A stretch of 64,000 nucleotides of DNA from IMGVR_UViG_3300027621_000003:1-64000, one strand, 5' to 3'; positions 1 through 64,000 are shown, counted from the stretch's first letter. The notes: generated from the letters alone by a model not told the origin. Made by a program: numbers and translations.

Positions 1-1387
1 CTGAAGAACCTGAGCTACCACTTGAACCTGATGAACCGCTTGTTCCGCTTTCTCCACTTGAACCTGATGTTCCTGAAGAACCTGAGCTACCACTTGAACC
101 TGATGTTCCGCTAGTTCCTGAAGAACCTGAGCTACCACTTGAACCTGATGTTCCTGAAGAACCTGAGCTACCACTTGAACCTGATGAACCGCTTGTTCCG
201 CTTTCTCCACTTGAACCTGATGTCCCACTAGTTCCTGAAGAACCACTTGAACCTGATGAACCGCTTGTTCCGCTTTCTCCACTTGAACCTGATGTTCCGC
301 TAGTTCCTGAAGAACCACTTGAACCTGATGTTCCGCTAGTTCCTGAAGAACCTGAGCTACCACTTGAACCTGAAGAACCTGATGTTCCGTCTATACCTGA
401 TGTTCCTGATGAACCTGATGAACCTGAAGAACCACTTGAACCTGAAGAACCTGATGTTCCTGAAGAACCACTTGAACCTGAAGAACCTGATGTTCCTGAA
501 GAACCACTTGAACCTGAAGAACCTGATGTTCCGCTAGTTCCTGATGAACCGCTTGAACCTGAAGAACCTGATGTTCCGTCTATACCTGATGTTCCTGAAG
601 AACCTGATGAACCACTTGAACCACTTGAACCACTTGAACCTGAAGAACCACTTGTTCCGCTTTCTCCACTTGTTCCTGAGGAACCTGAAGAACCGCTTGA
701 ACCTGATGTTCCGCTAGTTCCTGATTCTCCTGATGTTCCTGAAGAACCTGAAGAACCACTTGAACCACTTGAACCTGAAGAACCACTTGAACCACTTGAA
801 CCTGAAGAACCACTTGTTCCGCTTTCTCCACTTGTTCCTGAAGAACCTGATGAACCACTTGAACCACTTGTTCCGCTTTCTCCACTTGTTCCTGAAGAAC
901 CTGAAGAACCACTTGAACCACTTGAACCTGAAGAACCACTTGAACCTGAAGAACCACTTGTTCCGCTTTCTCCACTTGTTCCTGAAGAACCTGAAGAACC
1001 GCTTGAACCTGATGAACCACTTGAACCACTAGTTCCTGATTCTCCTGATGTTCCTGAAGAACCACTTGAACCACTTGAACCTGAAGAACCACTTGAACCA
1101 CTTGAACCTGAAGAACCACTTGTTCCGCTTTCTCCACTTGTTCCTGAAGAACCACTTGAACCACTTGAACCTGAAGAACCTGAAGAACCACTTGAACCTG
1201 ATGAACCACTTGTTCCTGAAGAACCACTTGAACCTGAAGAACCACTTGTTCCGCTTTCTCCACTTGTTCCTGAAGAACCGCTTGAACCTGAAGAACCGCT
1301 TGAACCTGAAGAACCGCTTGAACCATCTATACCAGAAATACCTGATGTTCCTGATGAACCTGAAGAACCACTTGAACCTGCAGTTCC
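1..1387 (-). repeat. 9-nt-period coding tandem repeat (about 150 Gly-X-Y triplets)
   Basis: Plus-strand units such as cctgaagaa, ccacttgaa, cctgatgtt and ccgctttct encode GSS/GTS/GES on the minus strand. Confidence 0.95.
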
Positions 1388-2248
1388 ACCCGTAAAATTA
1401 ATTATTACATTACCACTTCCGTTATTAACAACTGAAGCACCTGAAAAAGTCATTCCTGTAACGTTTGTTGCCGTTACACCTGACGTGGCATCATAAACTG
1501 TAAGTGGATTACCTCCTCCACCTGATGTGAATCCTGTAACAGCTACTGAAGTACCATCACTATTGTTTAAAGTAAGCGTGCCATTACCACTATTATATGT
1601 TCCACCTGTGACAGTACCAGTAAATCCTGTAATTGTAACAGTACCACCAGTACTATTAAATAAATCTAATTCTTGTGTTCCTGAAAAATAAGTTCCACCT
1701 GTAATTTGAACATCAGAACCATAAAATATTTGCCATCTAGCATCATTTTTTGTAACACCACTAACACCTTCAATTGTTGAACCAGTCCAAGCAGCAATGA
1801 AATCTCTACCTGCTTGTGAACGAGCATTTACGGTGGTAAAAGTAGATGATTGAGTTACTGCTGATGTACCTGTAAGTCCAGATAACGAATCCCATAAAGC
1901 TGTGTAATTGGGAATAGTATATTGATAAACTGTATCATTTTCTTGTACATGGACTTGCATACCTAATCTTCTTCTACCTGAAGATATATTATCAGAATTA
2001 AGAGTTAATTGAGTGAATGACAAACCAGTATTAGGTTGTACCGCAATAGCAATTGGAATTGTATTAGCGGATAACGCTTGAGACCCTGTACCACTAAATG
2101 TTAACTTTAAATTTTCAAGATAATAAACCTCCATATATCCCCCAACTTGAGAAACTGAAAAATTAGTTCCTTGCGTACTTGTTAATGACACACCTTGGGG
2201 TGCGGATAACGTGGAATTAGCTACGGGATTTTTATAAGGAAATGACAT
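1..2248 (-). CDS. Collagen-like (Gly-Ser-Ser/Gly-Thr-Ser) fibre protein, 3'-truncated by the window edge; not in the ORF track
   Basis: ATG at 2248 (MSFPYKNPVANSTLSAPQG...) reads in frame to the window edge. About 285 aa of Thr/Gly-rich N-terminal domain are followed by Gly-X-Y triplets (GSS, GTS, GES, GID). TATTTATA lies 5 nt upstream. Confidence 0.88.
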   Translation of the reverse strand, partial: MSFPYKNPVANSTLSAPQGVSLTSTQGTNFSVSQVGGYMEVYYLENLKLTFSGTGSQALSANTIPIAIAVQPNTGLSFTQLTLNSDNISSGRRRLGMQVHVQENDTVYQYTIPNYTALWDSLSGLTGTSAVTQSSTFTTVNARSQAGRDFIAAWTGSTIEGVSGVTKNDARWQIFYGSDVQITGGTYFSGTQELDLFNSTGGTVTITGFTGTVTGGTYNSGNGTLTLNNSDGTSVAVTGFTSGGGGNPLTVYDATSGVTATNVTGMTFSGASVVNNGSGNVIINFTGGTAGSSGSSGSSGTSGISGIDGSSGSSGSSGSSGSSGSSGTSGESGTSGSSGSSGSSGTSGSSGSSGSSGSSGSSGSSGSSGTSGESGTSGSSGSSGSSGSSGSSGSSGSSGTSGESGTSGSSGSSGSSGSSGSSGTSGESGTSGSSGSSGSSGSSGSSGSSGSSGTSGESGTSGSSGSSGSSGTSGESGTSGSSGSSGSSGSSGSSGSSGSSGSSGTSGESGTSGTSGSSGSSGSSGTSGESGTSGSSGSSGSSGSSGSSGSSGTSGIDGTSGSSGSSGSSGTSGTSGSSGSSGSSGTSGSSGSSGSSGTSGSSGSSGSSGSSGSSGTSGIDGTSGSSGSSGSSGSSGTSGTSGSSGSSGTSGTSGSSGESGTSGSSGSSGSSGTSGTSGSSGESGTSGSSGSSGSSGSSGTSGSSGSSGSSGTSGTSGSSGSSGSSGTSGSSGESGTSGSSGSSGSSGSS

Positions 2249-2253
2249 ATGAT

Positions 2254-2261
2254 TATAAATA
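2254..2261 (-). promoter_or_regulatory. TATTTATA putative late promoter
   Basis: One of 16 sense-strand TATTTATN copies before gene starts; 5 nt before ATG. Confidence 0.65.
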
Positions 2262-2289
2262 GATGATTATTTTGTTTAGTTAGTTTTGG

Positions 2290-4314
2290 TTATGTTTTTG
2301 ATGTTGCGTTATAATAATTTGAACCAGTTGCTACAGTCAATAGGAAGTTAGGTGTAACCCAAACAACTCTATAAGTTCCACTTGGAACCGCAGCTCCTGA
2401 AGTAACAGTAACGTTAAACGCATTTGTTGATGGCACTAAACTTGGTACTGCCGCCTGTACGTCATCTGCACTTGGTGATGTTCCAACATCCATAACATAA
2501 TTATTTAATGAGCCACCAATACCATCTAAAGGTAACCAAATTGAATAAAAATATGACAAAGTTGGATTTACAACACTAGATGAAACTTGGATGTTAGTAA
2601 ATAAATAATTAATTTGTGATATTGGTCCGCTTAAAGTAACAGGAGTTACGAAATCACTACCACCATTTACAAACGAAGGTTGGTGTGCGTAAATATTTAA
2701 ATCACCACTATAATTTCCTGCTCCATTATTCGGTGGTCCACCTACTGAAAAATAACTATACCATTCTTGAGCATTACTTGCTGTGGCGTAAGCTAATAAA
2801 GTTGCATCAGCTCCACTAGTTTGTGGTTCAGCAAATATGTAAGCCCTAAATGCCGCGCCAGAAGGTGTTGGAGTAGGTGTTTTCGTTGGAGTTAATGTAT
2901 TAGTTGGAGTTAATGTATTAGTTGGAGTTAATGTATTAGTTGGTGTTTGTGTAACTGTTGGTGTATTAGTCGGTGTTTCAGTCAATGTTGGTGTATTAGT
3001 ATTTGTTGGAGTATTAGTTACCGTTGGTGTTTGTGTTGGTGTTAAAGTATTTGTAGGTGTAACAGTGTTTGTCGGAGTAAGTGTATTAGTTGGCGTATTA
3101 GTTGGTGTCTGAGTTACCGTTGGCGTATTTGTTGGTGTTTCAGTAGGTGTTTGAGAAGGTGTTTTAGTCACCGTTGCTGTTACACTTGGTGTTACTGTAT
3201 TAGTTGGTGTCTGAGTTACCGTTGGTGTAACTGTCTTTGTCGGTGTTACACTTGGTGTTACAGTTTTAGTAGGTGTAATTGTGTTAGTTGGTGTAATTGT
3301 ATTGGTTGGTGTAAGCGTATTTGTTGGAGTAAGTGTATTTGTTGGTGTTAATGTTGGTGTAGGTGTCTTAGTATTTGTTGGTGTTACAGTCTGAGTTGGC
3401 GTTTCAGTATTTGTTGGTGTTAAAGTATTTGTTGGTGTTACAGTCTGAGTTGGCGTTTCAGTATTTGTTGGTGTTACTGTTGGAGTTGGTGTATTAGTAG
3501 GTGTTTCAGTATTTGTTGGTGTTAAAGTATTTGTTGGTGTTACAGTCTGAGTTGGCGTTTCAGTATTTGTTGGTGTTACTGTTGGAGTTGGTGTATTAGT
3601 AGGTGTTTCAGTATTTGTTGGTGTTACTGTCTGAGTTGGCGTTTCAGTATTTGTTGGTGTTACTGTCTGAGTTGGCGTTTCAGTATTTGTAGGTGTTACT
3701 GTCTGAGTCGGAGTAAGTGTATTAGTAGGTGTTACTGTCTGAGTTGGCGTTTCAGTATTTGTTGGTGTTACTGTAGGTGTTGATGTTTGAGAAGTTGTTG
3801 GTGTTACTGTAGGTGTTGATGTTGTTGTAACACTTGGTGTAACCGTAGGTGTTACTGTAGGTGTTGATGTTGTTGTAACACTTGGTGTAACCGTAGGTGT
3901 TAAAGTTTCAGTATTAGTTGGTGTTACTGTAGGTGTTGGAGATGGTGTTGTTGGAGCACCTGCGTTAGTGGTGGTTGGTGTTGGTGTTAATGTTGGTGTT
4001 AAAGTGTTGGTTGGCGTTAATGTTGGTGTTGGTGTAACTGTTCGTGTTGGCGTTGGTGTTAATCCTGAACAAGCCGCAGGGTCTGAAAGTATAATTTCAA
4101 CACCATTATACATGTCAGTCCTTGAAGCACCTGTATAAACTGCCGTTGTTCCTGTTGTTCCTGTGTAAATATCAAAAGGACCTACAGCATTATTTACACC
4201 ATCAAATCTTATAATAACACTTTGAGAGCACGCAGTAACTGAGTATTGTGACGAGACAGGGTTATCACAACCGCTTGCCGTATTTACTACAATAATTTCA
4301 TAATTTACCGCCAT
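2290..4314 (-). CDS. Mucin-like Thr-Pro repeat virion/appendage protein
   Basis: 674 aa; about 400 aa of TPT(N/Q/V)T repeats between small globular ends; structural-gene context; TATTTATA at 4333-4340. Confidence 0.8.
2860..4062 (-). repeat. Thr-Pro coding repeat ([12 protein letters not shown]-type units)
   Basis: Near-identical 18/36-nt units such as tcagtatttgttggtgttac. Confidence 0.9.
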
Positions 4315-4396
4315 CTAATTTTTGATTTCCTATATAAATACAAAGACATTATAGTTTTTAAATGAAACTTTAAATAATTTAAAATAAAAGTTAAAA

Positions 4397-4708: not shown

Positions 4709-4709
4709 T

Positions 4710-7310
4710 TTAACTCACACAATTAATATCGTATTGGATTATTAGGTCAATTATAATTTGTTGGTTTGCCAATTCACCTTCTGTGGCTATTGTTACAACA
4801 CTTGATACCGTATCTATTGTAACACTACTAACACCTGGTATTGACAATAAAATTGTTTCAACCGCATCATACCATTGTTGATTGGTTGGAATGTCTAATA
4901 ATGTTGTACCCGTATAAAAAGAATCGGTATATGTTACACCACTAACTTCCACTTGAGCAACAAAAGTTGCCGCACTTAATAAACAATTGGTGTGACCAGA
5001 TATAATATCATAATAGCCTTCATTTAACATTTGAAGAATACCTCGTTCAGTCCCTGAAGTATATTGAAATTCTCTTTCACACATTGTGTAAATTTGATAT
5101 GTTGATTCAATTGCTGTACAACTTATAATTGTACTTCTTGCTTGAACACATCCATTATCATCAACTATTGTTAAACTATATGTTCCACCCGTAAGACCTG
5201 TTACAGTTATATTTGGTGGATTACCACTAACATTATCAGACCAAGTAAATGTAAATGGTGGTGTACCTGAACTAATCAATGCCGTGATTGTACCACCTGA
5301 ACCAGTTCCACAACCTGTTGGGTATAAAGAATATTGTAATGGTGTACCGTATGATACCGTAACATTTCCTGATTGAACACAACCTGTTGTATCAGTCACC
5401 GTATAACCATAAGTACCAGTTCCTAATTCACCAAACGTTGCAGCACTAAAACTAGTGTTAACGGACTGACCTGTACTTAATTGATAGGTATATGGTGCGG
5501 TACCACCTGTTGATAATGTAAGTGTAACACTACCATTATTTAAATTACAAGTTGAACCTGAACTTGATGTTGTTACACTATAAAGATTTTCGGCTATGAT
5601 GGTTATTTCTTGTTCATATAAACAACCACTACTATCAGAAACATAAACTGTATAAGTTCCACTTTCCAAATTAACGAACTCATAAGCAGTTGAATTTGAA
5701 ACCGCATTAACTGTTGATGAATCAGGATAAACTAATGTATATGTATATGGAATTTCACCACCGTCTAATGTAATTGATATTTTACCATCACTACTACCAC
5801 AAGTAGAGTTAGTTTGAGTAACAGATAAACTATTAAATGTATTTGGCGTTTGTAAAACTGTTGAAAATGTCGCTTTACATAAAGCTGCGTCAGTAATATC
5901 TACTGAGAATGGTCCTGCCGATAATCCCGAAAAAACATATGATGTTGCATAAGTAATCGCAACGGTACCATTTGAACCTGAATAATAATAAGGCCCAGTT
6001 CCACCAGTTATAGTCAATGTAAGTGAACCATCAGCAACAAAACAAGAAGGTGTAACCGCAGTCCATGAACCTAACCCAATACTTGGGACATAATCTACTG
6101 TAGCCACTTGTGATAATACACAACCATCTGATGATGTTACTGTAACTTCGTAACCACCAGCTGTAAGACCTGTAATAGTATCTCCTGTAATACCATCAGA
6201 CCATTCATAAGTAAACGGAGCGTTACCCGTAACTCCAGTAACATACACTTTTCCTGTTGGACTAGCACATTCGGTGTCATTTACAATATAAAATCCGTAA
6301 TCAAGCGTATTTGATGAATATATTATACAAGTCTCAGAAGTTCCTGAACAACCAGCACAGTCAACTGCTGTTACTGAATAAGTTCCAGCCGATAAATTAT
6401 TAAACGTCCCAATATTTGTTGAGGTTGTTTGTGAATCAGCAAATCCATAAGCAGAATATAAATAATAGTTAATAATATTACAACTTGATGTTGCTGTTAC
6501 CGTCAATGAACCATTATTTAAACCACATGTTGTTGCAACTTCAGTTTGAAATCCAATTGTCAACCCTGAACCAATAACAACGTTAATATAAAATTCGTTA
6601 TTTGTAGGTGCTGTCGAGTCATTTGCTCTAACATAGTAAGTTCCTGCAGGTAAATTTGTTTTGTAGTCACCGGTGCCTAAGTTTGGATTATACCAATCAA
6701 ATGTATAAGGTGGTGTTCCTCCACTAGCGGTAATTAATGCCGAACCCAATCCTGTTTCACAAGCACCTGTAACTGTTAAAGTATATGCAAATGTATTACC
6801 ATTGTTATATGGTGATGATGTTGGTGTTGGAGTTAGTGGAGGTTCCGTTGGCGTAATTGTTGGTGTTATAGTCGGAGTTTGTGTAATTGTTGGTGTTACA
6901 GTCGGAGTTCGTGTAATTGTAGGCGTTTGTGTTAAAGTATTTGTTGGTGTTACAGTCGGAGTTGACGTAATTGTAGGCGTTTGTGTTACACTTGGTGTTT
7001 GTGTCGGTGTATGATTTGGGGTTCTTGTTGGAAATGGTGTTAAAGTAAGTGATGGTGTTGGTTCTGGTTCACAAGGAGGTAATAATAATCCTCCATAATT
7101 TATATATCCTGTTCCACCATCTTCAATATAAACATCGTCACTTGTTGCATAAGAACCACTTGCTTGACAACCACAAACACTATAAAATTGACCAGCACCA
7201 AATAAATTACTTAATAATGTGGTACCATCAGTACAATCATAATAATAAAATGTTTGGTCACTGTCCGATTCATTCCAAACCATCCATCTAATACAAGTAC
7301 TACAAGCCAT
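4710..7310 (-). CDS. SprB-repeat adhesin-like virion protein with Pro-Thr linker
   Basis: About 7 repeats of C-x3-4-G-S-(I/L)-T-(L/V)...GGTxPY(T)Y...GL-x-AG-x-Y-x-V-T-V-T-D-x2-GC, the SprB repeat pattern; Pro/Thr stalk at about residues 82-166. Confidence 0.8.
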   Translation of the reverse strand: MACSTCIRWMVWNESDSDQTFYYYDCTDGTTLLSNLFGAGQFYSVCGCQASGSYATSDDVYIEDGGTGYINYGGLLLPPCEPEPTPSLTLTPFPTRTPNHTPTQTPSVTQTPTITSTPTVTPTNTLTQTPTITRTPTVTPTITQTPTITPTITPTEPPLTPTPTSSPYNNGNTFAYTLTVTGACETGLGSALITASGGTPPYTFDWYNPNLGTGDYKTNLPAGTYYVRANDSTAPTNNEFYINVVIGSGLTIGFQTEVATTCGLNNGSLTVTATSSCNIINYYLYSAYGFADSQTTSTNIGTFNNLSAGTYSVTAVDCAGCSGTSETCIIYSSNTLDYGFYIVNDTECASPTGKVYVTGVTGNAPFTYEWSDGITGDTITGLTAGGYEVTVTSSDGCVLSQVATVDYVPSIGLGSWTAVTPSCFVADGSLTLTITGGTGPYYYSGSNGTVAITYATSYVFSGLSAGPFSVDITDAALCKATFSTVLQTPNTFNSLSVTQTNSTCGSSDGKISITLDGGEIPYTYTLVYPDSSTVNAVSNSTAYEFVNLESGTYTVYVSDSSGCLYEQEITIIAENLYSVTTSSSGSTCNLNNGSVTLTLSTGGTAPYTYQLSTGQSVNTSFSAATFGELGTGTYGYTVTDTTGCVQSGNVTVSYGTPLQYSLYPTGCGTGSGGTITALISSGTPPFTFTWSDNVSGNPPNITVTGLTGGTYSLTIVDDNGCVQARSTIISCTAIESTYQIYTMCEREFQYTSGTERGILQMLNEGYYDIISGHTNCLLSAATFVAQVEVSGVTYTDSFYTGTTLLDIPTNQQWYDAVETILLSIPGVSSVTIDTVSSVVTIATEGELANQQIIIDLIIQYDINCVS

Positions 7311-7337
7311 AACTATTAAATATTATTATAAGGTAGT

Positions 7338-11246: not shown

Positions 11247-12326
11247 TTATGTAACATTAAAAAAGTAATATCCATATTTTATTAAGTCTCCCAAATTATC
11301 AACCTCACCAATTCTTTGTATTCTTTCATACGCCGAATTTTTACCTCGTTCAATGAATATATTGGATTGGACTTCAGCTTGAGCAATGACACCCAACAAT
11401 AATTCATCTTTTACTAAGGGTTCTTGTACCATCCAATCTGCGGTTAAACCCGATGACTGAAGAAAGAAAATTGTAGTACCATCAGCATAGTCAACATAAT
11501 CAACATTCTGTATTGTATATGCAGTATAAACTAAATTAATTTCAGTAATAATACCATAATCAACATTATTCTTTTGAACAGGTACTAATAATTTAAATTT
11601 TGGTGTACCATAAAATGCCAAGTCGTTAATTCTTGAATCAGTATATCCACTAACAGTAAATGGTACTGAAACATATGCCGATGAAACTTGGTCTTCAACT
11701 AAATTAACACTGTCACCAGTAAAAATATAGTTGTACGATATTGGTGTTGCACTCCAAGAACCAACATTTGGTGTAAAGTATGCAGTTCCACTTGGATTAA
11801 AATCAGGAACTTCAACATATGGTGTTTGAATATTTTTAGATACCGTTGTGTTTCCCCAAGGATTATTTTGTGATAATGTAATTGTATATTCACTTGGGTT
11901 TGTATTATACGTGTGAACAATAGAATTAGGCGCGTACGTATTAATTGGTTGTAATGGTGTTCCATCACCCCAATCTAAAAAATATGTTGACAACTGAAGG
12001 TAGGCATTAAACTCAACATCTGCGGTATTATAAACATACCAAGTAAATGGATTTCCTGTTGTAGATGAAAATATAAAATTATTTACAACATTTATTTGTG
12101 AAATTGCACCATCAAATACAGAGTAATAACCCAAATCAATTGTATTTTGTGTTAAAAGAATTGGAACTGTAAGACCTGTTAAACTTGACGTGTTGTTAAC
12201 ACCACTTGTTAAAGTTTGGGTCATAGATGAATACACCCCAAATGTCTCACCTGAGTAAGTAACATCATGAATGATTGTATTCAAGACTTCGGGTGATACC
12301 CTGATATTCATTACTTGTGTATCCAT
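11247..12326 (-). CDS. Structural protein with PKD/Ig-like domain
   Basis: YFLDWGDGT...VHTY...YTITLS PKD signature; 359 aa. Confidence 0.65.
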   Translation of the reverse strand: MDTQVMNIRVSPEVLNTIIHDVTYSGETFGVYSSMTQTLTSGVNNTSSLTGLTVPILLTQNTIDLGYYSVFDGAISQINVVNNFIFSSTTGNPFTWYVYNTADVEFNAYLQLSTYFLDWGDGTPLQPINTYAPNSIVHTYNTNPSEYTITLSQNNPWGNTTVSKNIQTPYVEVPDFNPSGTAYFTPNVGSWSATPISYNYIFTGDSVNLVEDQVSSAYVSVPFTVSGYTDSRINDLAFYGTPKFKLLVPVQKNNVDYGIITEINLVYTAYTIQNVDYVDYADGTTIFFLQSSGLTADWMVQEPLVKDELLLGVIAQAEVQSNIFIERGKNSAYERIQRIGEVDNLGDLIKYGYYFFNVT

Positions 12327-21752: not shown

Positions 21753-24265
<2,513 letters not shown>

Positions 24266-36855: not shown

Positions 36856-37165
36856 AATAGAAGAAATAGTTGTCTAAACCATTTTTATAGTCTTGTAATG
36901 AAGATATGAGTGGATATGGAATTGTCAATATAGCATTATTTGGAATATTCCATTCTAATCCACCATATTCAGGATTGCCTTGTAATATTAACCAACCAAA
37001 AAAAGGTGTTCCATAATATTGTTGGGATACTTTGTCTAACCTACTAAATCCAGTTCTGTAGATATATCTTTGGTCAGATGATTTTGACTGTAGTGGAATA
37101 AATGGAACCACAGTTTGTTCACCATTAATTGAAAATTGTTGATATCGGTTGTAATAAGCATCCAT
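36845..37165 (-). CDS. LysM-like baseplate wedge protein (T4 gp53 / P2 gpX-like)
   Basis: RLDKVSQQYYGTPFFGWLILQGNP...LTIP. Confidence 0.8.
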   Translation of the reverse strand: MDAYYNRYQQFSINGEQTVVPFIPLQSKSSDQRYIYRTGFSRLDKVSQQYYGTPFFGWLILQGNPEYGGLEWNIPNNAILTIPYPLISSLQDYKNGLDNYFFYYGR

Positions 37166-55985: not shown

Positions 55986-55986
55986 T

Positions 55987-56322
55987 ATGCCAATAATTAA
56001 ATCAATACCCGCAATCAAAATCATTAATGGTGTTCAGATTAGAACTTCTGAATTAGCCATTGTTTCTGAACCACAATATACCACAAATGGAGAATATGCT
56101 ATTGTTGTTCGTGGTGTTAGTAATTGTATTTTAAAATTAAATTCATTAACTACGGATAGAGTTAAAATAAAAGCAATGACAAACGTATTAATTTTGCCTG
56201 ACATCAATTCAATTGATGAAGAGTGGGATGAAATCTCTATTGAAAAAGGTGCTTGTGTAGAATTTGTTTTTATTAACCAATCTTGGTATATCTTATCTTC
56301 AGATGGTTTGAAAATTTGGTAA
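55987..56322 (+). CDS. Small beta-rich protein, possibly virion-associated
   Basis: ATG 1 nt after the neck gene stop; ends with CVEFVFINQSWYI, like short tail-fibre-type repeat modules. Confidence 0.5.
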   Translation: MPIIKSIPAIKIINGVQIRTSELAIVSEPQYTTNGEYAIVVRGVSNCILKLNSLTTDRVKIKAMTNVLILPDINSIDEEWDEISIEKGACVEFVFINQSWYILSSDGLKIW

Positions 56323-59034
56323 TCCCGTAATTTGATTTTCCCAACCTTCTTCTGCTTTTTCGTAGATATAAAAAGGTTCCAATCCACGTTTTTTCCAATA
56401 AGACATTTCCTGTTCAGAAATTGTTAACACATCGTTCAAATCATCTTGGTCACCTTCACCTAATGGATGTCCATTAATTAATTCACATTGTGCTGTTGTA
56501 AATATTCCACGTTTTTCGGGGTCAGTTACAATGAACGATTCACGAACTTCATCTTTAAACACAACCAATAATGGGTCAATACGTTTGTTAAAAGTCGCAA
56601 TTGCTCTCGCCACATTATAGTTTCCTGTTAAATCAGGATTTGCTTCCAATTCCGCAGGGTCCAACAAATAACAATTCAAAACCAAACTATCCGCCTTCTT
56701 AACCACATCACCGTGAGATGCTCTTAACCCGTTATTTACATAAGTAATCACATCACCCAAGTTAACACTTAAGTTATGGTGAATTGCAAGTTCCATATGT
56801 GCTTGACGTGACATTAATGAACCCGCTTTTGTTTTTTGAGTACAACGGAATTTATAATCACTCAAAGAATGTTTAATTCTCGCTCTTTGGGCAATTTTTG
56901 CCAGAGGAACTTTCATATCATAAATCTTTTGTAGATATTCATAGTAATACTCAATAAAATCTTTACCCTGACCTTGAAGTAACATCTTAATTCCTTTGTC
57001 CAAAAACTCTTCAATATAACCTGGTAATTTCTTTGATTTAATAGTGTTACCAACCAATTTGATTTTACCCTTATCGGTCATCAAAGCGTAATTCTTACGA
57101 GCCAAGTTAATACAAGCCGGCCAAACACCATCATTATCCAAAGCCATCTCACCTCTCATGAATATGTCATTGTATTCGGCAATATCCGCAGCCGCACCAA
57201 CGTATTCTTTACCTTCCACTACTTTCCAATTCAAACCACGACCAATGTATTTACGGTCACTAATATTAGATGGTGATGAAAAGTTCACACCATCCGTATC
57301 CATTACCAATGGTTCATAGCCACGTTTCATAAAGAAACCAATCATCTGACGCAAGTATTGTCTACCTGTACAAGTAATTTGTTCACCCATGTACATATCA
57401 CCCCAATGGAATACTTGTGGTGCTGATAACGCACCAAACATTGAGTTAATAAAGATTTTAATCGGTAACTGTTTACGGTCATATGATTTTGACTTCTTAG
57501 GGTCACTCTTTTCAAACTCTTCAGCCAATTGTTTGTACATAATACGAGAATTTCTAAAGTAACCCAATAATCCTTTCATCGCACCTGTCACATCACAATC
57601 AGGAAACACATCATGTACTAACTGAATAGATGGATAAAGTGAACTAAAGTCCAATTTCAATACAGATGTAGAATAACCAACTTTAATCAAACGAGACAAT
57701 CCACCAACAAAGTCAGTCTTATCTTGTTTAGCGGGAATAGCCAAGTTGTATTTATAAGACCAAGCCAACATAATCATCTTCCACAAAGTTGCCGTACCCA
57801 TCGTACTTACACGCTCATAAGTTGTAGGAACCAACGAAGCCAAAAGGAACGAACCTTGGTTAAACTCGTCATCTACACGTAGGGTTTCATCTAAGTCATC
57901 ATCAAGATACTGTTCTACAATTTTGTCACCAGTAGTCTTGATATATGTACCAGGAAAACGTGTATCAAGGTCATCAAATTGTGGATTATCGGCCTTTTTA
58001 TACTTTCCGTTTTTAACATTAAACCAATAATCTTCTTTTTTGGCGTACATAGGACCGATTTCAGTGTGGTCAATGTATACACGGTCTTCATCTTGAATCT
58101 CCAAGTACTGAGTTATGTATTTCAAACCCGCAGACTTAATGTTTGAGTTAATCGCTTGGGCTCTACGAACTGAGTGTAAGATATCAATGATGTTATACCC
58201 CCACATTGAGGTCTGTGGGTATCTTTCTACCTCATTGGCAAGCTTCAACATTTGTTCTTTCTGAGATATGGTACGTTGGGGGTTAAGTGACTTGGCTATC
58301 TTCTTTATATCCAATCCAAGTGCCTTGGCTCTCTCAAAAATCCACAACCAGTCAAAGTTAAATGAGTTATATCCACCAATGATAGATGGTTTAAGTTCGT
58401 TAATTGTGTCAAAGAATTTAATTAAACCCAACTTTTCAGTTTCTTCTGTATCACATTCAATTACCTCGTGGAACCCTTTGTTTGTTTTCATTCCAATCAT
58501 GAATATACGACCATCCTTTGGTTCAAGTGAGGTCGTTTCTAAGTCAAATACAAGTCGGGTTATGTCATTGTATTCTTCATATCCTTTGAATAGTCGTTTT
58601 TCTTTCTGAATAAGATATTGTTCAACGGGGGGTAACATAAGAAACTTATCTTTAGCCTTATCACCCCAAGGGTCAATACCACCATCACGGAAAAATTGAA
58701 TTAATGAACGATATCCACCAAGGCATTTAACTATATAAGTTAAACCATTCTCTAATCTTTCATTATCGTGGGTTTCTAACTTGTCAATGACAATTTTATG
58801 TCTTGACATTGCATCCTTTTGTAAACCTTTTGAACCTTGATAAAAATTTAAACCCTTTAGGTCACCGACCCAAGCAAAAGGTATAAAATTATCTTTTATG
58901 ATTTGTTTTCCCTTACCAGGAACTTCTTTAATTTTGTAGATTGCGTCTGTCACATAATCAAATTCTATGGACACAATGAATTGTTCGGGGTCGCCACCTT
59001 CCAAGAACTCTTTAATTTCTTCGTTTGATATCAT
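56299..59034 (-). CDS. Family B DNA polymerase with 3'-5' exonuclease
   Basis: ExoI FDLET, ExoII GYNSFNFD, motif A LDFSSLYPS, motif B KIFINSMFG, motif C MDTDG. Confidence 0.95.
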   Translation of the reverse strand: MISNEEIKEFLEGGDPEQFIVSIEFDYVTDAIYKIKEVPGKGKQIIKDNFIPFAWVGDLKGLNFYQGSKGLQKDAMSRHKIVIDKLETHDNERLENGLTYIVKCLGGYRSLIQFFRDGGIDPWGDKAKDKFLMLPPVEQYLIQKEKRLFKGYEEYNDITRLVFDLETTSLEPKDGRIFMIGMKTNKGFHEVIECDTEETEKLGLIKFFDTINELKPSIIGGYNSFNFDWLWIFERAKALGLDIKKIAKSLNPQRTISQKEQMLKLANEVERYPQTSMWGYNIIDILHSVRRAQAINSNIKSAGLKYITQYLEIQDEDRVYIDHTEIGPMYAKKEDYWFNVKNGKYKKADNPQFDDLDTRFPGTYIKTTGDKIVEQYLDDDLDETLRVDDEFNQGSFLLASLVPTTYERVSTMGTATLWKMIMLAWSYKYNLAIPAKQDKTDFVGGLSRLIKVGYSTSVLKLDFSSLYPSIQLVHDVFPDCDVTGAMKGLLGYFRNSRIMYKQLAEEFEKSDPKKSKSYDRKQLPIKIFINSMFGALSAPQVFHWGDMYMGEQITCTGRQYLRQMIGFFMKRGYEPLVMDTDGVNFSSPSNISDRKYIGRGLNWKVVEGKEYVGAAADIAEYNDIFMRGEMALDNDGVWPACINLARKNYALMTDKGKIKLVGNTIKSKKLPGYIEEFLDKGIKMLLQGQGKDFIEYYYEYLQKIYDMKVPLAKIAQRARIKHSLSDYKFRCTQKTKAGSLMSRQAHMELAIHHNLSVNLGDVITYVNNGLRASHGDVVKKADSLVLNCYLLDPAELEANPDLTGNYNVARAIATFNKRIDPLLVVFKDEVRESFIVTDPEKRGIFTTAQCELINGHPLGEGDQDDLNDVLTISEQEMSYWKKRGLEPFYIYEKAEEGWENQITGLPNFQTI

Positions 59035-59104: not shown

Positions 59105-59133
59105 AGTATAGGTATTGGATTTAACCTCGTCAA
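59105..59133 (-). promoter_or_regulatory. Sigma70-like promoter of the DNA polymerase gene
   Basis: TTGACG-N17-TATACT followed by a structured leader of about 65 nt. Confidence 0.7.
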
Positions 59134-59531: not shown

Positions 59532-59547
59532 TACATATAAATACTCA

Positions 59548-61221
59548 TTAAGATTCTTTTCTTAATGAACCATCATAAAAATCAAACCTATCATGTTCAG
59601 TAGGTGTCATAAGTAAGAGTCCTGGATTGATTTCTCCCTTGATTGTTTCTTGGAAAATATAACTCATCCAAGTTTGTTCAAATGGATGTCCCCATGTTGT
59701 TTCTAAAAACATTTTCTTATTACCATGACGGGTCACAACTTGTGGCCAGTTACAATAATAAATCTCACCAGATACAAATGGAACACCATTGTGAGTCCTC
59801 ACATGTTTAAATTTTGTTCTTGGAGCATTTGGGTCTTGACCATGAACAGGTAAATTGGGTTTTTCAGGCCAGTGTTCTAATCTAAAGTTTTGTGGGACAT
59901 TGTACCACGACCATTGGATACCATTATCACCATAAAATTCGCTATAATTAAACTTTAAAAAATCAAAGTGATTGTTTTTTGTAATTTCTAAGGTGTTTTT
60001 GTATAAATTTGGAACATATCTATTAAATCCATTCCTACATACCTCACCTTTATTTGGGTAAAAGAACATATCATCTTCAAAAAAGAAATGAAAATCAAAT
60101 CCATTTTCTTCAGCATGTTCTGAAATCCATTGTCTACCACCACAGATACCTAAATTGTCTTTCTTAATATGTTCAAAACCAAATTCATTACAAATTACCG
60201 AGTATTCCTCGGTAGTTGATAAATCAGATGAATTATCCAAAAGATATTTTTTTGGTTTATCTAAAAAATCTTTATCATATTGAATCATTGATTCAATTAA
60301 TGTTTTAAATTGTTTTGGGCTATTAAATGTTATAACATATAATGCCGTGTTGTCTGTATTCAAATCATCATTAATTGGTGTAAATCCCTGTTTGTTGTTT
60401 TTCTCTAATGTTTCATTCTTTAAATCCTCAAAGAATTTCCCAAATAAACCATTTGATTCAATTTCAAAGTAGTCAATTAAATCGGCATGTTTATAACACA
60501 TGATTGAAAATATTGACTCCTCAGTCCCCATAAGTCCACGAGACAACGTAGATGATAACAAATTGTAATAAATCCCGTTAATGTCCCCTATTGTGTGTTT
60601 TGGACCACCAAAGAACCCACCACGTGCAACCATTTCCACCTTTTCACCAACAATTCCATTAAGTTGATTAAAGTTAAATCCGTGTATTTCGTTTTCAGCT
60701 TGATATGGGAAACAAACAAATGAAAATTTGTTAATATGGTTAGGTAATTTCTCTAAGACTTTATCATGTGTAAAATAACCAGGGTGAACCGTGTTTGTTA
60801 AACCAGCATCAATCCAAAACATCATGTCTGAATTAAATGGGTCCATAATTCTGGCGTCATTTAACAAAAATACCTTTGACATAACCAAAGGATTATACAT
60901 ATCTAATCTTGCTTGTGTTGATTGTGATAACCAACCCGCCTGATTATACCATTCGGGGTTTGTTCTGATTGTTTGTATTTTGTCATAAAATTCATTTTTG
61001 AACCATTCTTGACTGCGAGATATAAACAATGTATTATCTTTGTTTCGTCTTTCAAAAACAAATGATTCTAAATCAGAATCACCAAAAATTATCATTGGAT
61101 TATCAACTTTTAATAGTTGGTCAAATTTATCCAAATAATGTTGAAATGAACGTGACCAACCTTCTTCTAGTTCATCACGTTTAATATTCCAAAGTCCCGT
61201 TACTAATGTTATTTTACTCAT
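59548..61221 (-). CDS. Two-domain glycosyltransferase (HtrL/YibB-like N-terminus plus GT-A/GT2-like C-terminus)
   Basis: ITLVTGLWNI, MSKVFLL, FWIDAG, GGFFGG, TEESIFS; then YVITFNS...LLDNS...NLGICGGRQ...FFEDD. Confidence 0.75.
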   Translation of the reverse strand: MSKITLVTGLWNIKRDELEEGWSRSFQHYLDKFDQLLKVDNPMIIFGDSDLESFVFERRNKDNTLFISRSQEWFKNEFYDKIQTIRTNPEWYNQAGWLSQSTQARLDMYNPLVMSKVFLLNDARIMDPFNSDMMFWIDAGLTNTVHPGYFTHDKVLEKLPNHINKFSFVCFPYQAENEIHGFNFNQLNGIVGEKVEMVARGGFFGGPKHTIGDINGIYYNLLSSTLSRGLMGTEESIFSIMCYKHADLIDYFEIESNGLFGKFFEDLKNETLEKNNKQGFTPINDDLNTDNTALYVITFNSPKQFKTLIESMIQYDKDFLDKPKKYLLDNSSDLSTTEEYSVICNEFGFEHIKKDNLGICGGRQWISEHAEENGFDFHFFFEDDMFFYPNKGEVCRNGFNRYVPNLYKNTLEITKNNHFDFLKFNYSEFYGDNGIQWSWYNVPQNFRLEHWPEKPNLPVHGQDPNAPRTKFKHVRTHNGVPFVSGEIYYCNWPQVVTRHGNKKMFLETTWGHPFEQTWMSYIFQETIKGEINPGLLLMTPTEHDRFDFYDGSLRKES

Positions 61222-62836
61222 TTTTATTTTTTATATTTTTAAAATATTTATTCCAATAATTGTAGGTTTTATAATCGTTTGGTGTACCCCAACAGATGTA
61301 ATTTTCAACCTCAAAAACTTTAACTTTTAAACCATCTTTAATATTTTGATTTAAAACATCATCAACATAAAATTCACCATTTGTTCTTATGTTTTCATTA
61401 TAATTTTTCTGTAATCCCTCCATAAAATATGTTCCCTTCCTGAAAAACATTGTACCAATTATTGCGTGAGTGATTAAAGGGTTTTCATAAATAAATTTTT
61501 TACAAGAAACATGTTTTATGTTATCATTCTCATCAACATCTAACCACGCATATGCGTTCGGATTAGTTTTACTGGCTTGATTATTTCTAAAAGTCCAAAC
61601 TATTACATCAATAGATTCATCATTTAAAAGTTCTAAATATTTTTTTCTATCATAAAAAACACCATTATCACAAGCGGAAATTAAAATGGGGTTTTCTAAG
61701 TTTATATTTGTTTCTTCAATACCTATTTCACAAGTACATGCCTGACCTTCAGTGGTTTCATTAATTGATATAACCTCTGTATTTAAAAAATGATTTTTTA
61801 AAGTCTTATCAATACCAAAATCGTCAATATGGTCTTGTAAACAAATAAACACATTATTGTCTGACTCAGGTAAACAATCAACGGCTTGTAAAATCATGGG
61901 TAATCCATCAACATCTAAAAGTGGTTTTGGTAAATCATATCCTTCTTCAGTAAATCTTGAACCTTTACCAGCCATAGGAAGTATCAAGGTGGTGTTTGGC
62001 GGGTTTTTTATTTTTATTTGTGGGAGATTAATATTTGAGAAGTATTTTGACCAACCTTTATAATTCTCTAAATCATAAGGAGTTCCCCACTGTAACATGT
62101 TTTCAATCTCAAATATACCAACTTTAAGACCATCATTAACTAACAGGTTATAAAGTAAACTTACATAATATTCACCATTTATATTAATGTCTAAATCAAT
62201 AAGTTTTTGAGAATATTCTTTTAATAAATTACCCGATTTAAAATAATACGTACCATTTGATGCGTATTCATTCATTTTGTTGTCAGTAAAAGGTTCTTTT
62301 TCTTTTATTTGAATAAGCTCCATATTACTTTCTTTACAGAAAGCATAATTGTCACTACCTAACATATGTGGGTGAAATCCTGTATAACAAGGAATTGCAC
62401 CATCAAGATTTTTATCATTTACGTAATTAATAAAATTTTCAAAATCCCAATAAGTTCCATAATCACAATAACTCACAATTGTTTGTTTGTTATTATCAAT
62501 AAAATCAAATATTTGATGAATTGCGTTTATTGGTCCCTTTGTGTTATTAGCAACTTCAAATATTCTACAATTTGGGGAAATATCATTAAGAACTTTCCTC
62601 ATATTTGTTTGTTTTAAATGAATATCATTACAAATAAAAATAACATCCTTTACACCAGGAAATAAATCAACAACATGTTTTATTATAGGATAACCATCAA
62701 CATCAATTAATGATTTGGTTTTTTCATATCCAGCGTCTATGAACCTTTTACCAATACCTGACATTGGTATAATTAATTGAATATTATTATCAATCATATT
62801 AAAATGGCATATCAATGAATTTTTCGGGGTCATCAA
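61214..62836 (-). CDS. Tandem sugar-phosphate nucleotidyltransferase-fold protein
   Basis: Two copies of the P-M-(S/A)-G-x-G-x-R-F...K-x-L-(I/L)-D-V-D-G motif, each with NGE(Y/F)YV and WGTP. True start may be near 62797. Confidence 0.82.
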   Translation of the reverse strand: MMTPKNSLICHFNMIDNNIQLIIPMSGIGKRFIDAGYEKTKSLIDVDGYPIIKHVVDLFPGVKDVIFICNDIHLKQTNMRKVLNDISPNCRIFEVANNTKGPINAIHQIFDFIDNNKQTIVSYCDYGTYWDFENFINYVNDKNLDGAIPCYTGFHPHMLGSDNYAFCKESNMELIQIKEKEPFTDNKMNEYASNGTYYFKSGNLLKEYSQKLIDLDININGEYYVSLLYNLLVNDGLKVGIFEIENMLQWGTPYDLENYKGWSKYFSNINLPQIKIKNPPNTTLILPMAGKGSRFTEEGYDLPKPLLDVDGLPMILQAVDCLPESDNNVFICLQDHIDDFGIDKTLKNHFLNTEVISINETTEGQACTCEIGIEETNINLENPILISACDNGVFYDRKKYLELLNDESIDVIVWTFRNNQASKTNPNAYAWLDVDENDNIKHVSCKKFIYENPLITHAIIGTMFFRKGTYFMEGLQKNYNENIRTNGEFYVDDVLNQNIKDGLKVKVFEVENYICWGTPNDYKTYNYWNKYFKNIKNKNE

Positions 62837-63671
62837 TGATTTTATTTATAATTAAATCATTCATATTGTAATTGGCTCCCTTAAAGTGGTTATAAAAACT
62901 AATAATTTTATCTTTAGTTTCTTTATTGTTGAATATTTGGCTTGTGTCGTGTGAAAAATTATAAAATTTAAGATTATAACTATCATAAACACAATTTGAC
63001 TCAAGTATGTTAGTATCTGAATATTTGTTTGGTATTTGGGGAATATTTAATCTTTCTAAGATTTGATTAGTTATCCATATATTGAAATAAGGTGTTAAAT
63101 GATTTTGTGTGACAAATAATCTCTTATCTTTATAATGTTCTAATATAAAATCAGATACTTTTATATCACAAATTTCATCTTTCTCTTTCAATAATTCCAT
63201 ACAAACATTCATTCTTTCTTCAAAATAAAAATCAATTAAACCATTGTCATACAAATTTATAATTTCATCAATTTTACGTTTTTCTAAAATCAAAGACATT
63301 ATATTTTTCCATCCACAATTAATTAATGTTTGAAGTGTCCATCTTGGCGAAGCGTCTTCCCAATAAGTGGTATAAAATGATGAGTTGTATACATAGGGAA
63401 AACTAATTTTTACACAACTGTCTTTTAACATTGATTTTAAATTCTCTGTACCATAAACTCCGTGACTTTCTCCAAGTGGTTGGTATATAAAAACATCACA
63501 GTTTTTAAGTTCATCAACATCAATATTTACTAATTTTTTTGTTTGTTCTCTATCATGATTCACATAGGATATTAAATCATAATGTTTTTTGAATTCAGGT
63601 AAATTATTTAATAATTCATAAACATAAATAATGGCCTGACAATTGCCATATAGTATACATTTTTTTTTCAT
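62799..63671 (-). CDS. WcbI-like polysaccharide biosynthesis protein (putative acetyltransferase)
   Basis: N-terminal ILYGNCQ, CDVFIYQP and LFVTQNH motifs. Confidence 0.7.
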   Translation of the reverse strand: MKKKCILYGNCQAIIYVYELLNNLPEFKKHYDLISYVNHDREQTKKLVNIDVDELKNCDVFIYQPLGESHGVYGTENLKSMLKDSCVKISFPYVYNSSFYTTYWEDASPRWTLQTLINCGWKNIMSLILEKRKIDEIINLYDNGLIDFYFEERMNVCMELLKEKDEICDIKVSDFILEHYKDKRLFVTQNHLTPYFNIWITNQILERLNIPQIPNKYSDTNILESNCVYDSYNLKFYNFSHDTSQIFNNKETKDKIISFYNHFKGANYNMNDLIINKIIDDPEKFIDMPF

Positions 63672-63675
63672 TTTT

Positions 63676-64000
63676 TTAAAGTAATTTTAACCAATCTTTA
63701 TAGTAATAGATATTTTCTAATTCCGACCACTTAGTATACACAATTTGACTATCTTCTAAAAGGTATACAAAATTGTTTTTATTAATAAAGGATGAAAACA
63801 TAGAAAAACCAGAATATCTTTGAGATAATAAAACATTTTTTGAAATGGACATCAAATACATATCATAATATGTTTGTTCAAAATCAAATTCAAATGATGG
63901 GGTTTTTAAATAATAATCCTTATACATATTTTCCCATTTTAATTTTTCTTTCTCATCATCAGAACAAAATAAAATTTTTGAGTTTGGTTTTTTTTCTAAA
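63676..64000 (-). CDS. Fucosyltransferase-like glycosyltransferase (GT11/GT23-like), 5'-truncated
   Basis: Frame open to the window edge: KILFCSDD...DMYLMS...SGFSMFS resembles GDP-sugar-binding motifs of alpha-1,2/1,6-fucosyltransferases. Confidence 0.6.
   Translation of the reverse strand, partial: LEKKPNSKILFCSDDEKEKLKWENMYKDYYLKTPSFEFDFEQTYYDMYLMSISKNVLLSQRYSGFSMFSSFINKNNFVYLLEDSQIVYTKWSELENIYYYKDWLKLL

Follow-up and report, generated by a model that had tools for sequence, protein, structure and literature searches.

General O-glycosylation in Bacteroidota is a periplasmic process directed by a short sequon of surface proteins, D-[ST]-[AILVMT]; phage proteins are assembled in the cytoplasm and do not come into contact with this compartment. 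In Bacillus, the collagen-like region of the exosporium protein BclA is O-glycosylated on Thr of G-x-T triplets. Patterns such as V-T-G-V-T-L (Big_2 domains) and Y-T-G-G-T (autotransporter PATR repeats) represent structural strand-entry motifs in surface beta-domains of bacteria and phages. To our knowledge, no cytoplasmic enzyme of bacteria or phages has been reported to O-glycosylate proteins at a short linear sequon of the kind considered here, i.e., phi-[ST]-G-x-T (where phi is a hydrophobic residue).

HMW1C/NGT glycosylates adhesins in the cytoplasm at N-x-S/T (PMC3012730, PMC4550697) and provides a precedent for a cytoplasmic enzyme that modifies a large beta-rich surface protein at numerous copies of a short linear sequon, although this modification is N-linked and involves a GT41 enzyme and another sequon. 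Aah/TibC O-heptosylates Ser/Thr on the beta-helix rungs of AIDA-I/TibA, also in the cytoplasm, through strand-loop-strand recognition (PMC3835316 and references therein). This mode of recognition resembles in spirit the contexts of the motif in the tail sheath insertion described below; however, these dodecameric heptosyltransferases belong to a family unrelated to the GT-A enzymes found here, and no heptose pathway was seen. The account of mycobacteriophage virion glycosylation (Freeman et al. 2023) given in PMC12619734 has phage glycosyltransferases (GTs) acting in the cytoplasm on structural proteins of the phage that encodes them, as is proposed here; the passages concerned place the glycans at the C-termini of capsid and tail-tube proteins and mention no short internal sequon. 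The tube protein of the phage studied here has neither the motif nor a Ser/Thr-rich tail. Phages also carry variable sets of GTs that build diverse DNA glycans, with the GT genes located beside replication genes (bioRxiv 10.1101/2023.12.21.572611; PMC13326640).

Here, we compare these systems with a stretch of 64,000 nucleotides (IMGVR_UViG_3300027621_000003:1-64000, referred to as the window), which represents the first 64 kb of the genome of an uncultured 295-kb jumbo myovirus from freshwater. Its host probably belongs to the Bacteroidota; the bacterial relatives of one of its proteins, which carries SprB repeats, are found in Saprospiraceae and related families. A preliminary description of the window had reported that [ST]-G-x-[ST] recurs in unrelated structural proteins and had interpreted it as the recognition sequon of a phage O-glycosyltransferase that builds a glycan coat. 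All genes described below are located on the (-) strand.

Overrepresentation of a tetrapeptide motif in virion proteins

The frequency of [ST]-G-x-[ST] was determined in 22 virion proteins (leaving out a collagen-like tract) and in 16 non-virion proteins, and compared against whole-protein shuffles as well as shuffles within blocks of 20, 30 and 50 aa, which preserve local composition. The virion proteins contained 92 copies as compared to approx. 35 expected (z approx. 10), with agreement among all shuffle types. Overrepresentation relative to composition-shuffled controls, as anticipated in the preliminary description, was thus observed, and our recount reproduced all of the copy numbers per protein that had been given there. 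The sharper form phi-[ST]-G-x-T, with a hydrophobic residue first and Thr last, occurred 39 times (6.5 expected). The number of copies in non-virion proteins was at expectation (6 vs. 4.7); the recount also agrees that PolB, NrdJ, the DnaB-like helicase, gp32 (SSB), the tube protein, gp6 and gp25 lack the motif and that SNF2, the RecA/UvsX-like protein (in its Walker A) and the 5'-3' exonuclease contain a single copy each.

Among 60 patterns of the [ST]-B-[ST] type the motif ranked second, behind [ST]P[ST], which tops the ranking because it is supplied by Thr/Pro linkers. As no residue pair exceeded a z of 3.7, the signal is of higher order, i.e., that of a coupled tetrapeptide. Codon use within the motif was ordinary; the signal is present at the protein level, and a DNA motif is ruled out. 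BLASTP and profile comparisons detected no common ancestry that would explain the presence of the motif across proteins. Virion proteins showed no enrichment of either N-x-[ST] (170 vs. 190 expected), which further separates them from HMW1C/NGT substrates, or D-[ST]-[AILVMT] (47 vs. 48.4 expected), even though the latter is the sequon used in the probable host phylum.

Motif sites were retained in orthologues at a moderate rate (0.46), as compared to 0.15-0.30 for permuted control patterns. Substitutions at position 1 were mainly to Asn/Asp (38% of replacements vs. 25% background), Val, Leu and Ile represented 31% of the replacements at position 4, and the motif Gly was not better conserved than other glycines (0.66 vs. 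0.73). These substitution spectra resemble those of a beta-strand preceded by a turn cap. Because of them, we lean towards a structural role of the motif within beta-rich surface modules, while any glycans would be carried by mucin-like or collagen-like tracts; we propose this combined interpretation tentatively, at slightly less than an even chance. The Ser/Thr side chain would cap a turn, Gly would permit a bulge or kink, and a beta-strand would begin or continue at the next Thr, which would make the motif a building element of exposed beta-rich modules and not a sequon recognized by an enzyme. The Big_2 and PATR motifs share the phi-[ST]-G-x-T pattern; neither family yielded a Pfam match in the motif-bearing proteins of the window. 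Retention above the level of the control patterns counts against the structural interpretation and would fit a trans-acting enzyme.

Location of the motif within tail and fibre proteins

Enrichment is found in outward-facing modules, i.e., the sheath insertion, the fibre head, baseplate-periphery proteins and giant tail proteins. The 290-aa N-terminal fibre head (1379..2248) contains 14 copies as compared to 3.2-3.8 expected, several of them spaced 7 residues apart. The same fibre continues into a collagen-like (GSS/GTS)n tract (1..1378; Pfam Collagen PF01391, E 2.8e-67), which is uninterrupted over at least 460 aa, extends past the contig start and adds approx. 146 copies beyond the 92 counted. 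As in BclA, a surface filament here bears a collagen-like stretch of G-x-[ST], and the core of the motif is G-x-T; BclA, however, is a bacterial spore protein modified by different enzymes. The adjacent protein (2290..4314) contains a mucin-like Thr/Pro linker of approx. 410 aa and has a motif count near expectation.

The SprB-repeat protein (4710..7310; PF13573, 5 stretches, E 1.4e-29), which has a short Thr/Pro linker, carries 17 copies, the majority of which occupy two positions that recur in the SprB repeat. It shares a C-terminal domain (hhalign probability 84%) with the 985-aa tail-module protein encoded at 7338..10295, in which the motif is also enriched (7 vs. approx. 2). Further enriched tail-module proteins have lengths of 359 aa (11247..12326; 5 vs. 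approx. 1; 75 orthologues), 563 aa (13095..14786; 4 vs. 1.1), 1682 aa (14783..19831; 8 vs. approx. 3) and, for one of two giant proteins, 2229 aa (30166..36855; 10 vs. approx. 3.8). The other giant protein (37165..42024; 1619 aa; 5 vs. 3.6) was the only one not individually enriched among those whose copies had been counted.

The contractile tail sheath (46333..49527; 1064 aa) is gp18-like as judged by tblastn to sheath genes and by Foldseek; its C-terminal core is homologous to gp18 (27.7% identity to T4 gene 18, E 5e-30), and its best Foldseek match is the T4 sheath chain 9mkb_dS. Thirteen of its 15 motif copies are located in an insertion at residues 100-360 (48448..49230), which by analogy with T4 gp18 would form an outer domain, while the 805-aa core contains only 2. 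All 42 sheath homologues carry 4-13 copies (1.2-3.3 expected). In the alignment of the insertion, 29 of 36 motif-bearing columns turn over, with density kept.

The structural context of the sheath sites was taken from the secondary structure of a predicted model. In the confident AF2 model of the insertion, four sites are predicted as coil at [ST]-G leading into a strand and one as a two-residue hairpin, four further sites would lie inside long strands, three in coil and one in a helix. The strand-entry, hairpin and strand contexts are among the reasons for our structural leaning, whereas the mixture of contexts counts against it.

A purely structural motif does not explain the turnover of columns at kept density. 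This pattern would fit a trans-acting enzyme, as would the position of 13 of the 15 sheath sites in what, from gp18, may be the outer domain. These data thus favor the alternative that phi-[ST]-G-x-T is a sequon for a cytoplasmic phage O-glycosyltransferase, which would coat the sheath, fibres and baseplate periphery before or during assembly. The lack of special conservation of Gly and the structural appearance of replacements at positions 1 and 4 argue against this alternative, while the protein-level signal with ordinary codons agrees with it; overall, we regard it as unlikely.

Enrichment among relatives and control phages

The motif was enriched in all 76 relatives examined (1.5-4.4x), down to 38% identity. 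Enrichment was missing in T4, Mel-JY01, XacN1 and two huge uncultured phages, LR756508 and LR756502 (observed/expected 1.10, 0.99, 1.13, 1.12 and 0.23, respectively). These data support that the motif enrichment is real, virion-specific and lineage-specific. Bacterial SprB-like adhesins showed a mild bias (1.46x; 2.1x for the phi form), and part of the signal is therefore generic to SprB-type repeats. This bias, together with the recurring SprB positions in the 4710..7310 protein, adds to our structural leaning and weakens the case for a sequon.

Lineage specificity and the sharing of the motif by non-homologous proteins are not readily explained by a purely structural motif. A trans-acting enzyme naturally accounts for both, as well as for the coupling of the tetrapeptide and its virion specificity. 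The same lineage-specific, cross-protein statistics would suit any other trans-acting reader, e.g., a protease, a chaperone involved in assembly or the machinery of some other post-translational modification; the analysis revealed no candidate for such a reader. Together with the possibility that the GT island does not act on the virion and remodels host surface polysaccharide against superinfection, in line with a comparative review of jumbo phages in which GT clusters are interpreted as modifying capsule or LPS (PMC7824862), we consider such readers highly improbable; the 12 island ORFs examined include no flippase, polymerase or lipid-carrier gene.

Glycan genes: a conserved glycosyltransferase and a variable island

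The core GT (59548..61221) consists of two GT-A domains, i.e., an N-terminal HtrL_YibB domain and a C-terminal GT2-like domain with an EDD motif, and is conserved in 391 viral contigs and in XacN1. It is a generic tandem GT-A, and its fold matches LH3, COLGALT1, LARGE1 and K4CP with TM-scores of only 0.22-0.30; single-domain matches include TarP and TarS. No GT of the window has a demonstrable protein-acceptor domain, which would speak against a sequon. Next to the core GT are two strain-specific genes, encoding a two-domain double sugar-1-phosphate nucleotidyltransferase (61214..62836) and a WcbI-like polysaccharide-biosynthesis protein (62799..63671; PF18588, E 3.5e-19), and the island extends beyond the window end with Fringe-like, methyltransferase and epimerase genes. 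Domain searches thus located the HtrL/GT2-like, nucleotidyltransferase and WcbI-like enzymes named in the preliminary description; a fucosyltransferase-like gene, also named there, had no match in the window in Pfam, NCBIfam or PHROGs, and a GT10 fucosyltransferase was found only in the relative L084.

The nucleotidyltransferase, the WcbI-like gene and the remaining island were present only in near-identical contigs (3 of 28 loci). The islands of relatives contain GT60 (PF11397, E 1e-66), GT10 and GT25 and adjoin collagen-, lectin- and LamG-bearing fibre-like ORFs. GT60, which is found in relatives and not in this strain's own island, is presumably a polypeptide-directed GlcNAc-transferase family. 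The fibre-like ORFs flanking the island in relatives are also enriched in the motif (e.g., 12 vs. 2.1 and 17 vs. 4.8); this enrichment, the plentiful GT genes and the presence of GT60 in relatives can be counted in favor of a sequon. Overall, the data support that glycan-building genes adjoining fibre genes are genuine.

The genomic context also suggests another acceptor, namely that DNA bases are glycosylated (T-even, TAGT/JGT or 5hmC hypermodification type) by the conserved GT, with possible participation of the variable island, and that the protein motif is unrelated. The core GT is separated from the family B DNA polymerase PolB (56299..59034) by a single 133-aa ORF, its XacN1 homologue is located near DNA polymerase and RNase H, and it is better conserved (68-78% identity) than the sheath (59-65%). 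Its C-terminal domain matches TAGT (24.5 bits, E 3e-5) and phrog_842, a beta-glucosyl-HMC alpha-glucosyltransferase family (E 5e-5, 57 residues); both matches are weak, and the TAGT score lies below the Pfam gathering cut-off of 27.5. GT-A enzymes of phages with TarP-like folds build varied glycans on DNA (bioRxiv 10.1101/2023.12.21.572611), and the TarP and TarS matches of the single domains would agree with such a role. In contrast to phage DNA glycosylation, however, searches of the 64-kb window and the next 7 kb yielded no partner base-modifying enzyme (cytosine methyltransferase, hydroxymethylase or TET/5mYOX), and the island adjoins fibre genes, with GT60, GT10, GT25 and lectin/collagen ORFs in relatives. 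These observations, and the staining of XacN1 virion proteins described below, count against DNA as the acceptor, which we regard as unlikely.

Co-variation with glycosyltransferases and comparison with XacN1

Co-variation of the motif with GT content, as proposed earlier, was assessed for the core GT and the genes near it, and did not hold. XacN1, a cultured jumbo phage of Xanthomonas, encodes a full-length homologue of the core GT (ORF330; 40% identity), located between its replication and baseplate modules, yet its virion proteins contain 49 motif copies as compared to 43 expected (1.13x). The GT and sugar genes near the core GT are all strain-specific (3 of 28 loci), whereas the motif is family-wide (76 of 76). 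As the motif follows neither the core GT into XacN1 nor the strain-specific island, we lean further towards a structural element. Thus, of the sequon interpretation, the enrichment and the glycan genes stand, while the motif could be tied to no enzyme, and any link between the motif and the GTs is putative.

Four core GT orthogroups have been reported for freshwater 'moraphages' (PMC12619734), which possibly represent the lineage of this phage, so that GTs specific to this lineage may be encoded beyond the window. A linear sequon read by such a GT, giving a glycan-coated sheath, baseplate periphery and fibres whose glycan composition is reshuffled by the hypervariable island, is in our view unlikely. 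If true, a viral diversification comparable to that of O-antigens would take place on the virion itself in a very abundant family of Bacteroidota-infecting freshwater jumbo phages.

Thr/Pro linkers occur in this phage, XacN1 and 40 of the 76 relatives and are absent in T4 and Mel-JY01; the linker of the 2290..4314 protein has BLAST matches to linkers of XacN1 virion-module ORFs. The core GT is thus tracked better by Thr/Pro linkers than by the motif. Purified XacN1 virions show at least two Schiff-positive protein bands (PMC5852040), a finding that would also be consistent with a sequon. Because of these bands, the distribution of the linkers and the location of the GT island, with its GT60, beside fibre-like ORFs in relatives, we favor glycosylation of virion tracts as part of our preferred interpretation. 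Most likely, the conserved enzyme with two GT-A domains and the fast-swapping island of sugar-nucleotide and transferase genes decorate virion proteins. The likeliest acceptors would be two classical types of O-glycan carrier, namely the collagen-like Gly-Ser/Thr-Ser tract and the low-complexity Thr/Pro linkers.

XacN1 thus shares with this phage the core two-domain GT and Thr/Pro linkers in virion-module proteins. It differs in its proteobacterial host, in its accessory genes (GT9, another GT and a carbamoyltransferase), and in the confinement of motif enrichment to a single giant protein, ORF384, in which the phi form occurs 8 times as compared to 1.6 expected, a point on the side of a sequon.

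Motif enrichment in the virion proteins

The tetrapeptide [ST]-G-x-[ST], which the preliminary description had counted by hand and proposed as a glycosylation sequon, was recounted across the window, and the hand counts were accurate. Among 22 virion proteins (13,982 aa, collagen tract left out; large unannotated ORFs were called virion proteins by homology or by tail-module position, and capsid genes lie outside the set), 92 copies were observed as compared to 35-36 in 20-, 30- and 50-residue block shuffles (z ~10), and 16 non-virion proteins contained 6 copies versus 4.7 expected. The structural proteins previously listed as motif-rich were indeed so, except for the protein starting at 37165, in which the motif is not enriched. 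[ST]G alone (1.29x) and G.[ST] alone (1.18x) are slightly overrepresented while both together reach 2.67x, indicating a coupled tetrapeptide. A preceding hydrophobic residue lifts the enrichment to 4.45x, and at the last position Thr (3.5x) is favored over Ser (1.3-1.7x); the sharpest form is phi-[ST]-G-x-T, where phi is hydrophobic (39 observed versus 6.5 expected).

Whole-protein and local-block shuffles agree, which excludes a composition artefact. Post-hoc choice of the motif is largely ruled out, as it ranked second among 60 related patterns scanned (behind [ST]P[ST], whose rank is due to Thr/Pro linkers) and its component pairs head an unbiased residue-pair scan, in which the top z was at most 3.7 for any pair. 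A DNA-level motif or codon effect is also ruled out: synonymous codons within the motif match the general usage of the genes and many different hexamers encode it. As codon usage inside the motif is ordinary, the signal lies at the protein level. Neither the sequon of Bacteroidota, the probable host phylum, nor N-x-S/T was enriched.

Lineage specificity and turnover of the motif

Motif enrichment is lineage-specific and family-wide. Five outgroup phages showed no enrichment, i.e., T4 (29 virion proteins; 33 observed, 30.1 expected), the syntenic distant relative Microcystis phage Mel-JY01 (14 and 14.2), the cultured Xanthomonas jumbo phage XacN1 (49 and 43.2), LR756508, the nearest GenBank sheath relative (8 and 7.1), and LR756502 (5 and 22), which rules out a generic trait of myovirus or jumbo-phage virions. 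Tail-module loci of relatives were enriched 1.5-4.4x in 76 of 76 cases, down to 38% identity in the protein starting at 11247, with a usually five- to eight-fold excess of the phi form.

The insertion of the sheath (1064 aa; 46333-49527, minus strand) carries 4-13 copies in all 42 homologues, as compared to 1.2-3.3 expected. Seven sheath sites are position-conserved, and 29 more alignment columns have the motif in only some lineages, which implies turnover of sites with density kept. Among orthologues with <80% identity in 14 families, motif sites were kept in 46% of cases versus 15-30% for permuted or substituted control patterns. Hidden paralogy of the motif-bearing domains is unsupported, as BLASTP matches were confined to Thr/Pro linkers and all-against-all hhalign of the 14 orthologue alignments found only one shared domain, at the C-termini of the proteins starting at 4710 and 7338.

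Structural context of the motif

Secondary structure around the motif was taken from AF2 models. The sheath model is confident over the insertion (residues 104-370, pLDDT ~80-90); across its conserved core (residues 761-993), pLDDT stays below 50 although 30 sequences were aligned. Four of the 13 insertion sites pass from a coil [ST]-G straight into a strand (127, 156, 189, 221) and another four are within long strands (136, 252, 276, 345), with three in coil (139, 185, 318), one in a two-residue hairpin turn (247) and one in a short helix (332). A Foldseek search against the PDB returned T4 gp18 as the sole match and was uninformative on the fold of the insertion.

Among orthologues, Asn and Asp are the preferred replacements at position 1, which would fit a turn cap made by the side chain, and Val, Leu or Ile make up 31% of the replacements at position 4, as for a strand residue; conservation of the motif Gly is 0.66 versus 0.73 for other glycines. 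A possible parallel is the phi-[ST]-G-x-T pattern of Big_2 domains and autotransporter PATR repeats, where its role as a strand-entry or rung motif is purely structural.

In the 4710 protein, most of the 17 copies fall at two recurring positions of SprB repeats. Although bacterial SprB-like adhesins cannot serve a phage enzyme as substrates, they show a mild bias themselves (1.46x; phi form 2.1x). A 1670-aa ORF of LR756502, a 642-kb uncultured phage, lies over the match to the SprB-repeat protein of the window (L260:18419-23429, L260 being the locus of that phage), is strongly depleted and holds 2 copies versus 15.1 expected; SprB-type repeats therefore need not carry the motif.

Glycosyltransferase and variable sugar genes

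A two-domain glycosyltransferase (59548-61221, minus strand; hereafter core GT) combines an HtrL_YibB domain (residues 3-251) with a GT2-like C-terminal domain in which an EDD motif is invariant. The AF2 model of the protein (pLDDT 78) shows two tandem GT-A folds, and the best PDB matches, all with two GT-A domains although at low TM-scores (0.22-0.30), were LH3, COLGALT1, LARGE1 and K4 chondroitin polymerase; single-domain matches include TarS, TarP, RmlT and POMGNT1. It is a core gene of the lineage; 391 viral contigs encode it at 68-100% identity and >6,500 database proteins match it. In some relatives it is joined whole to an FkbM-type methyltransferase (P0116).

Two genes upstream of it encode a WcbI-like protein and a protein in which the sugar-1-phosphate nucleotidyltransferase domain occurs twice. 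Past the window end the contig encodes an NAD-dependent epimerase/dehydratase, a Methyltransf_24 enzyme and a Fringe-like GT31, along with six ORFs that lack annotation. The HtrL/GT2-like, nucleotidyltransferase and WcbI-like enzymes reported earlier were recovered; no fucosyltransferase-like gene was found in the window by Pfam, NCBIfam or PHROGs. ORF 54870-55985 was rejected as such a candidate, being the virion gene for the gp13 neck protein.

Comparison of gene content shows a hypervariable island upstream of the core GT. Of 28 loci with complete flanks, 3 have the upstream sugar-gene set, all in near-identical contigs, and the whole nucleotidyltransferase/WcbI/epimerase/methyltransferase/Fringe set is missing from relatives that share 92-93% identity in the core GT. 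Replacements in four relatives (loci L088, L084, L096 and L115; each 1-10000, corresponding to the region past the window end) comprise GT60 (PF11397, E 1e-66), GT10 fucosyltransferase and GT25 genes. The polypeptide GlcNAc-transferases of Skp1 and of trypanosomes belong to GT60. These islands also hold fibre-like ORFs bearing domains of the lectin, collagen or LamG type, which are motif-enriched and have Thr/Pro linkers.

The core GT might instead glycosylate DNA bases, a separate and serious rival that we nevertheless consider unlikely. It adjoins PolB, with one 133-aa ORF between, and weak matches of its C-terminal domain were to TAGT (24.5 bits, cut-off 27.5) and to phrog_842, the PHROG of the T-even beta-glucosyl-HMC alpha-glucosyltransferase (E 5e-5). 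Diverse glycans on DNA are known products of phage GT sets. Against this, no hydroxymethylase or TET-type partner was found within the 71 kb examined. No mention of HtrL, WcbI or Fringe was found in papers on DNA glycosylation.

Distribution of the motif and of Thr/Pro linkers relative to the glycosyltransferase

Full-length homologues of the core GT (~40% identity) occur in the cultured jumbo phages XacN1, Xoo-sp13, RAS14 and CM1; in XacN1 the gene lies between the replication and baseplate modules. Co-variation of motif and glycosyltransferase content, a check suggested in the preliminary description, failed in the best comparison available: XacN1 has the core GT, but its virion proteins reach only 1.13x. 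ORF384 alone stands out (2823 aa; XacN1 locus L241:34021-42492), with 8 phi-form copies versus 1.6 expected. This ORF, annotated as a glycerophosphoryl diester phosphodiesterase, also has Thr/Pro linkers. Purified XacN1 virions are reported to show at least two Schiff-positive glycoprotein bands (PMC5852040), and ORF384 is a candidate for one of them.

Thr/Pro linkers, by contrast, go with the core GT across the genomes compared. They total 490 residues in 2 ORFs of the window and 1,248 residues in 6 ORFs of XacN1 (92 kb examined), are absent from T4 and Mel-JY01, and occur in 40 of the 76 tail-module loci of relatives. The window linkers have BLAST matches to those of XacN1 ORF350, ORF370, ORF372 and ORF384. 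The mucin-like linkers of the window are very long (~410 aa in 2290-4314 and ~80 aa in 4710-7310, both minus strand). If the virion proteins carry glycans, these linkers and the collagen-like tract would be the more probable acceptors.

Overall, we tentatively favor the view, while holding it below even chances, that the motif is a structural element of the exposed beta-modules of this lineage, because motif and core GT fail to co-vary in XacN1, the motif is family-wide whereas the enzymes are strain-specific, its substitutions look structural, and SprB-type repeats show part of the signal generically. These same observations make a sequon read by a glycosyltransferase rather doubtful. We retain that possibility because a trans-acting reader would neatly explain a coupled motif, with turnover, common to non-homologous virion proteins of one lineage; it is weakened yet alive, as the co-variation test covers very few independent lineages and glycosyltransferases were surveyed over part of the 295-kb genome, so that others may be encoded elsewhere.

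To our knowledge, phage virion self-glycosylation is represented by few cases, with the acceptor rule undefined. A sequon would make glycan shielding of tails and fibres predictable from sequence, and the hypervariable island would then amount to virion serotype variation, bearing on receptor binding, defence evasion and grazing. A structural motif would be a useful marker of lineage-specific exposed beta-module construction and a warning that Ser/Thr-Gly patterns may be mistaken for sequons. On either reading, XacN1 offers a cultured proxy.

Gene content and likely host

The window is part of a 294,914-bp contig (IMGVR_UViG_3300027621_000003), hence a jumbo phage, with ~33% GC and nearly all window genes on the minus strand. 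Pfam, NCBIfam and protein-atlas searches identify it, by homology, as a distant T4-like myovirus. Virion genes include gp6/Baseplate_J (19906-21747), gp25 (21753-22214), a T4 baseplate protein (44070-44819) and the gp19 tube (44897-45385); replication and other genes encode NrdJ, a DnaB-like helicase, a 5'-3' exonuclease, a RecA/UvsX-like protein, gp32, SNF2, PolB and a superoxide dismutase fusion. The latter (53298-54842, plus strand) has ~280 aa that lack annotation C-terminal to its Fe/Mn superoxide dismutase (residues 39-228), a fusion unusual in phage.

Hundreds of related viral contigs exist, and freshwater metagenomes very commonly contain this lineage. The bacterial relatives of the SprB-repeat protein belong to Saprospiraceae, Lewinellaceae and Chitinophagales, which suggests Bacteroidota as the host phylum. 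The lineage may correspond to the freshwater 'moraphages', which have 200-307 kb genomes, Bacteroidota hosts and four core GT orthogroups (PMC12619734).

Three giant tail-module proteins, all on the minus strand, have no Pfam match (14783-19831, 1682 aa, also without a PHROG match; 30166-36855, 2229 aa; 37165-42024, 1619 aa). The PHROGs search, which took in the first of these, further tail proteins lacking annotation and ORFs of the island, gave essentially no matches. The C-terminal domain that hhalign finds in both 4710-7310 (aa 720-864) and 7338-10295 (aa 824-984), at 84% probability and E 7e-6, may be a module that the two proteins share for attachment or receptor binding. GC rises to 40.6% within positions 1-4000, as compared to ~31-35% elsewhere; this is where the collagen-like tract and the Thr/Pro repeats lie.
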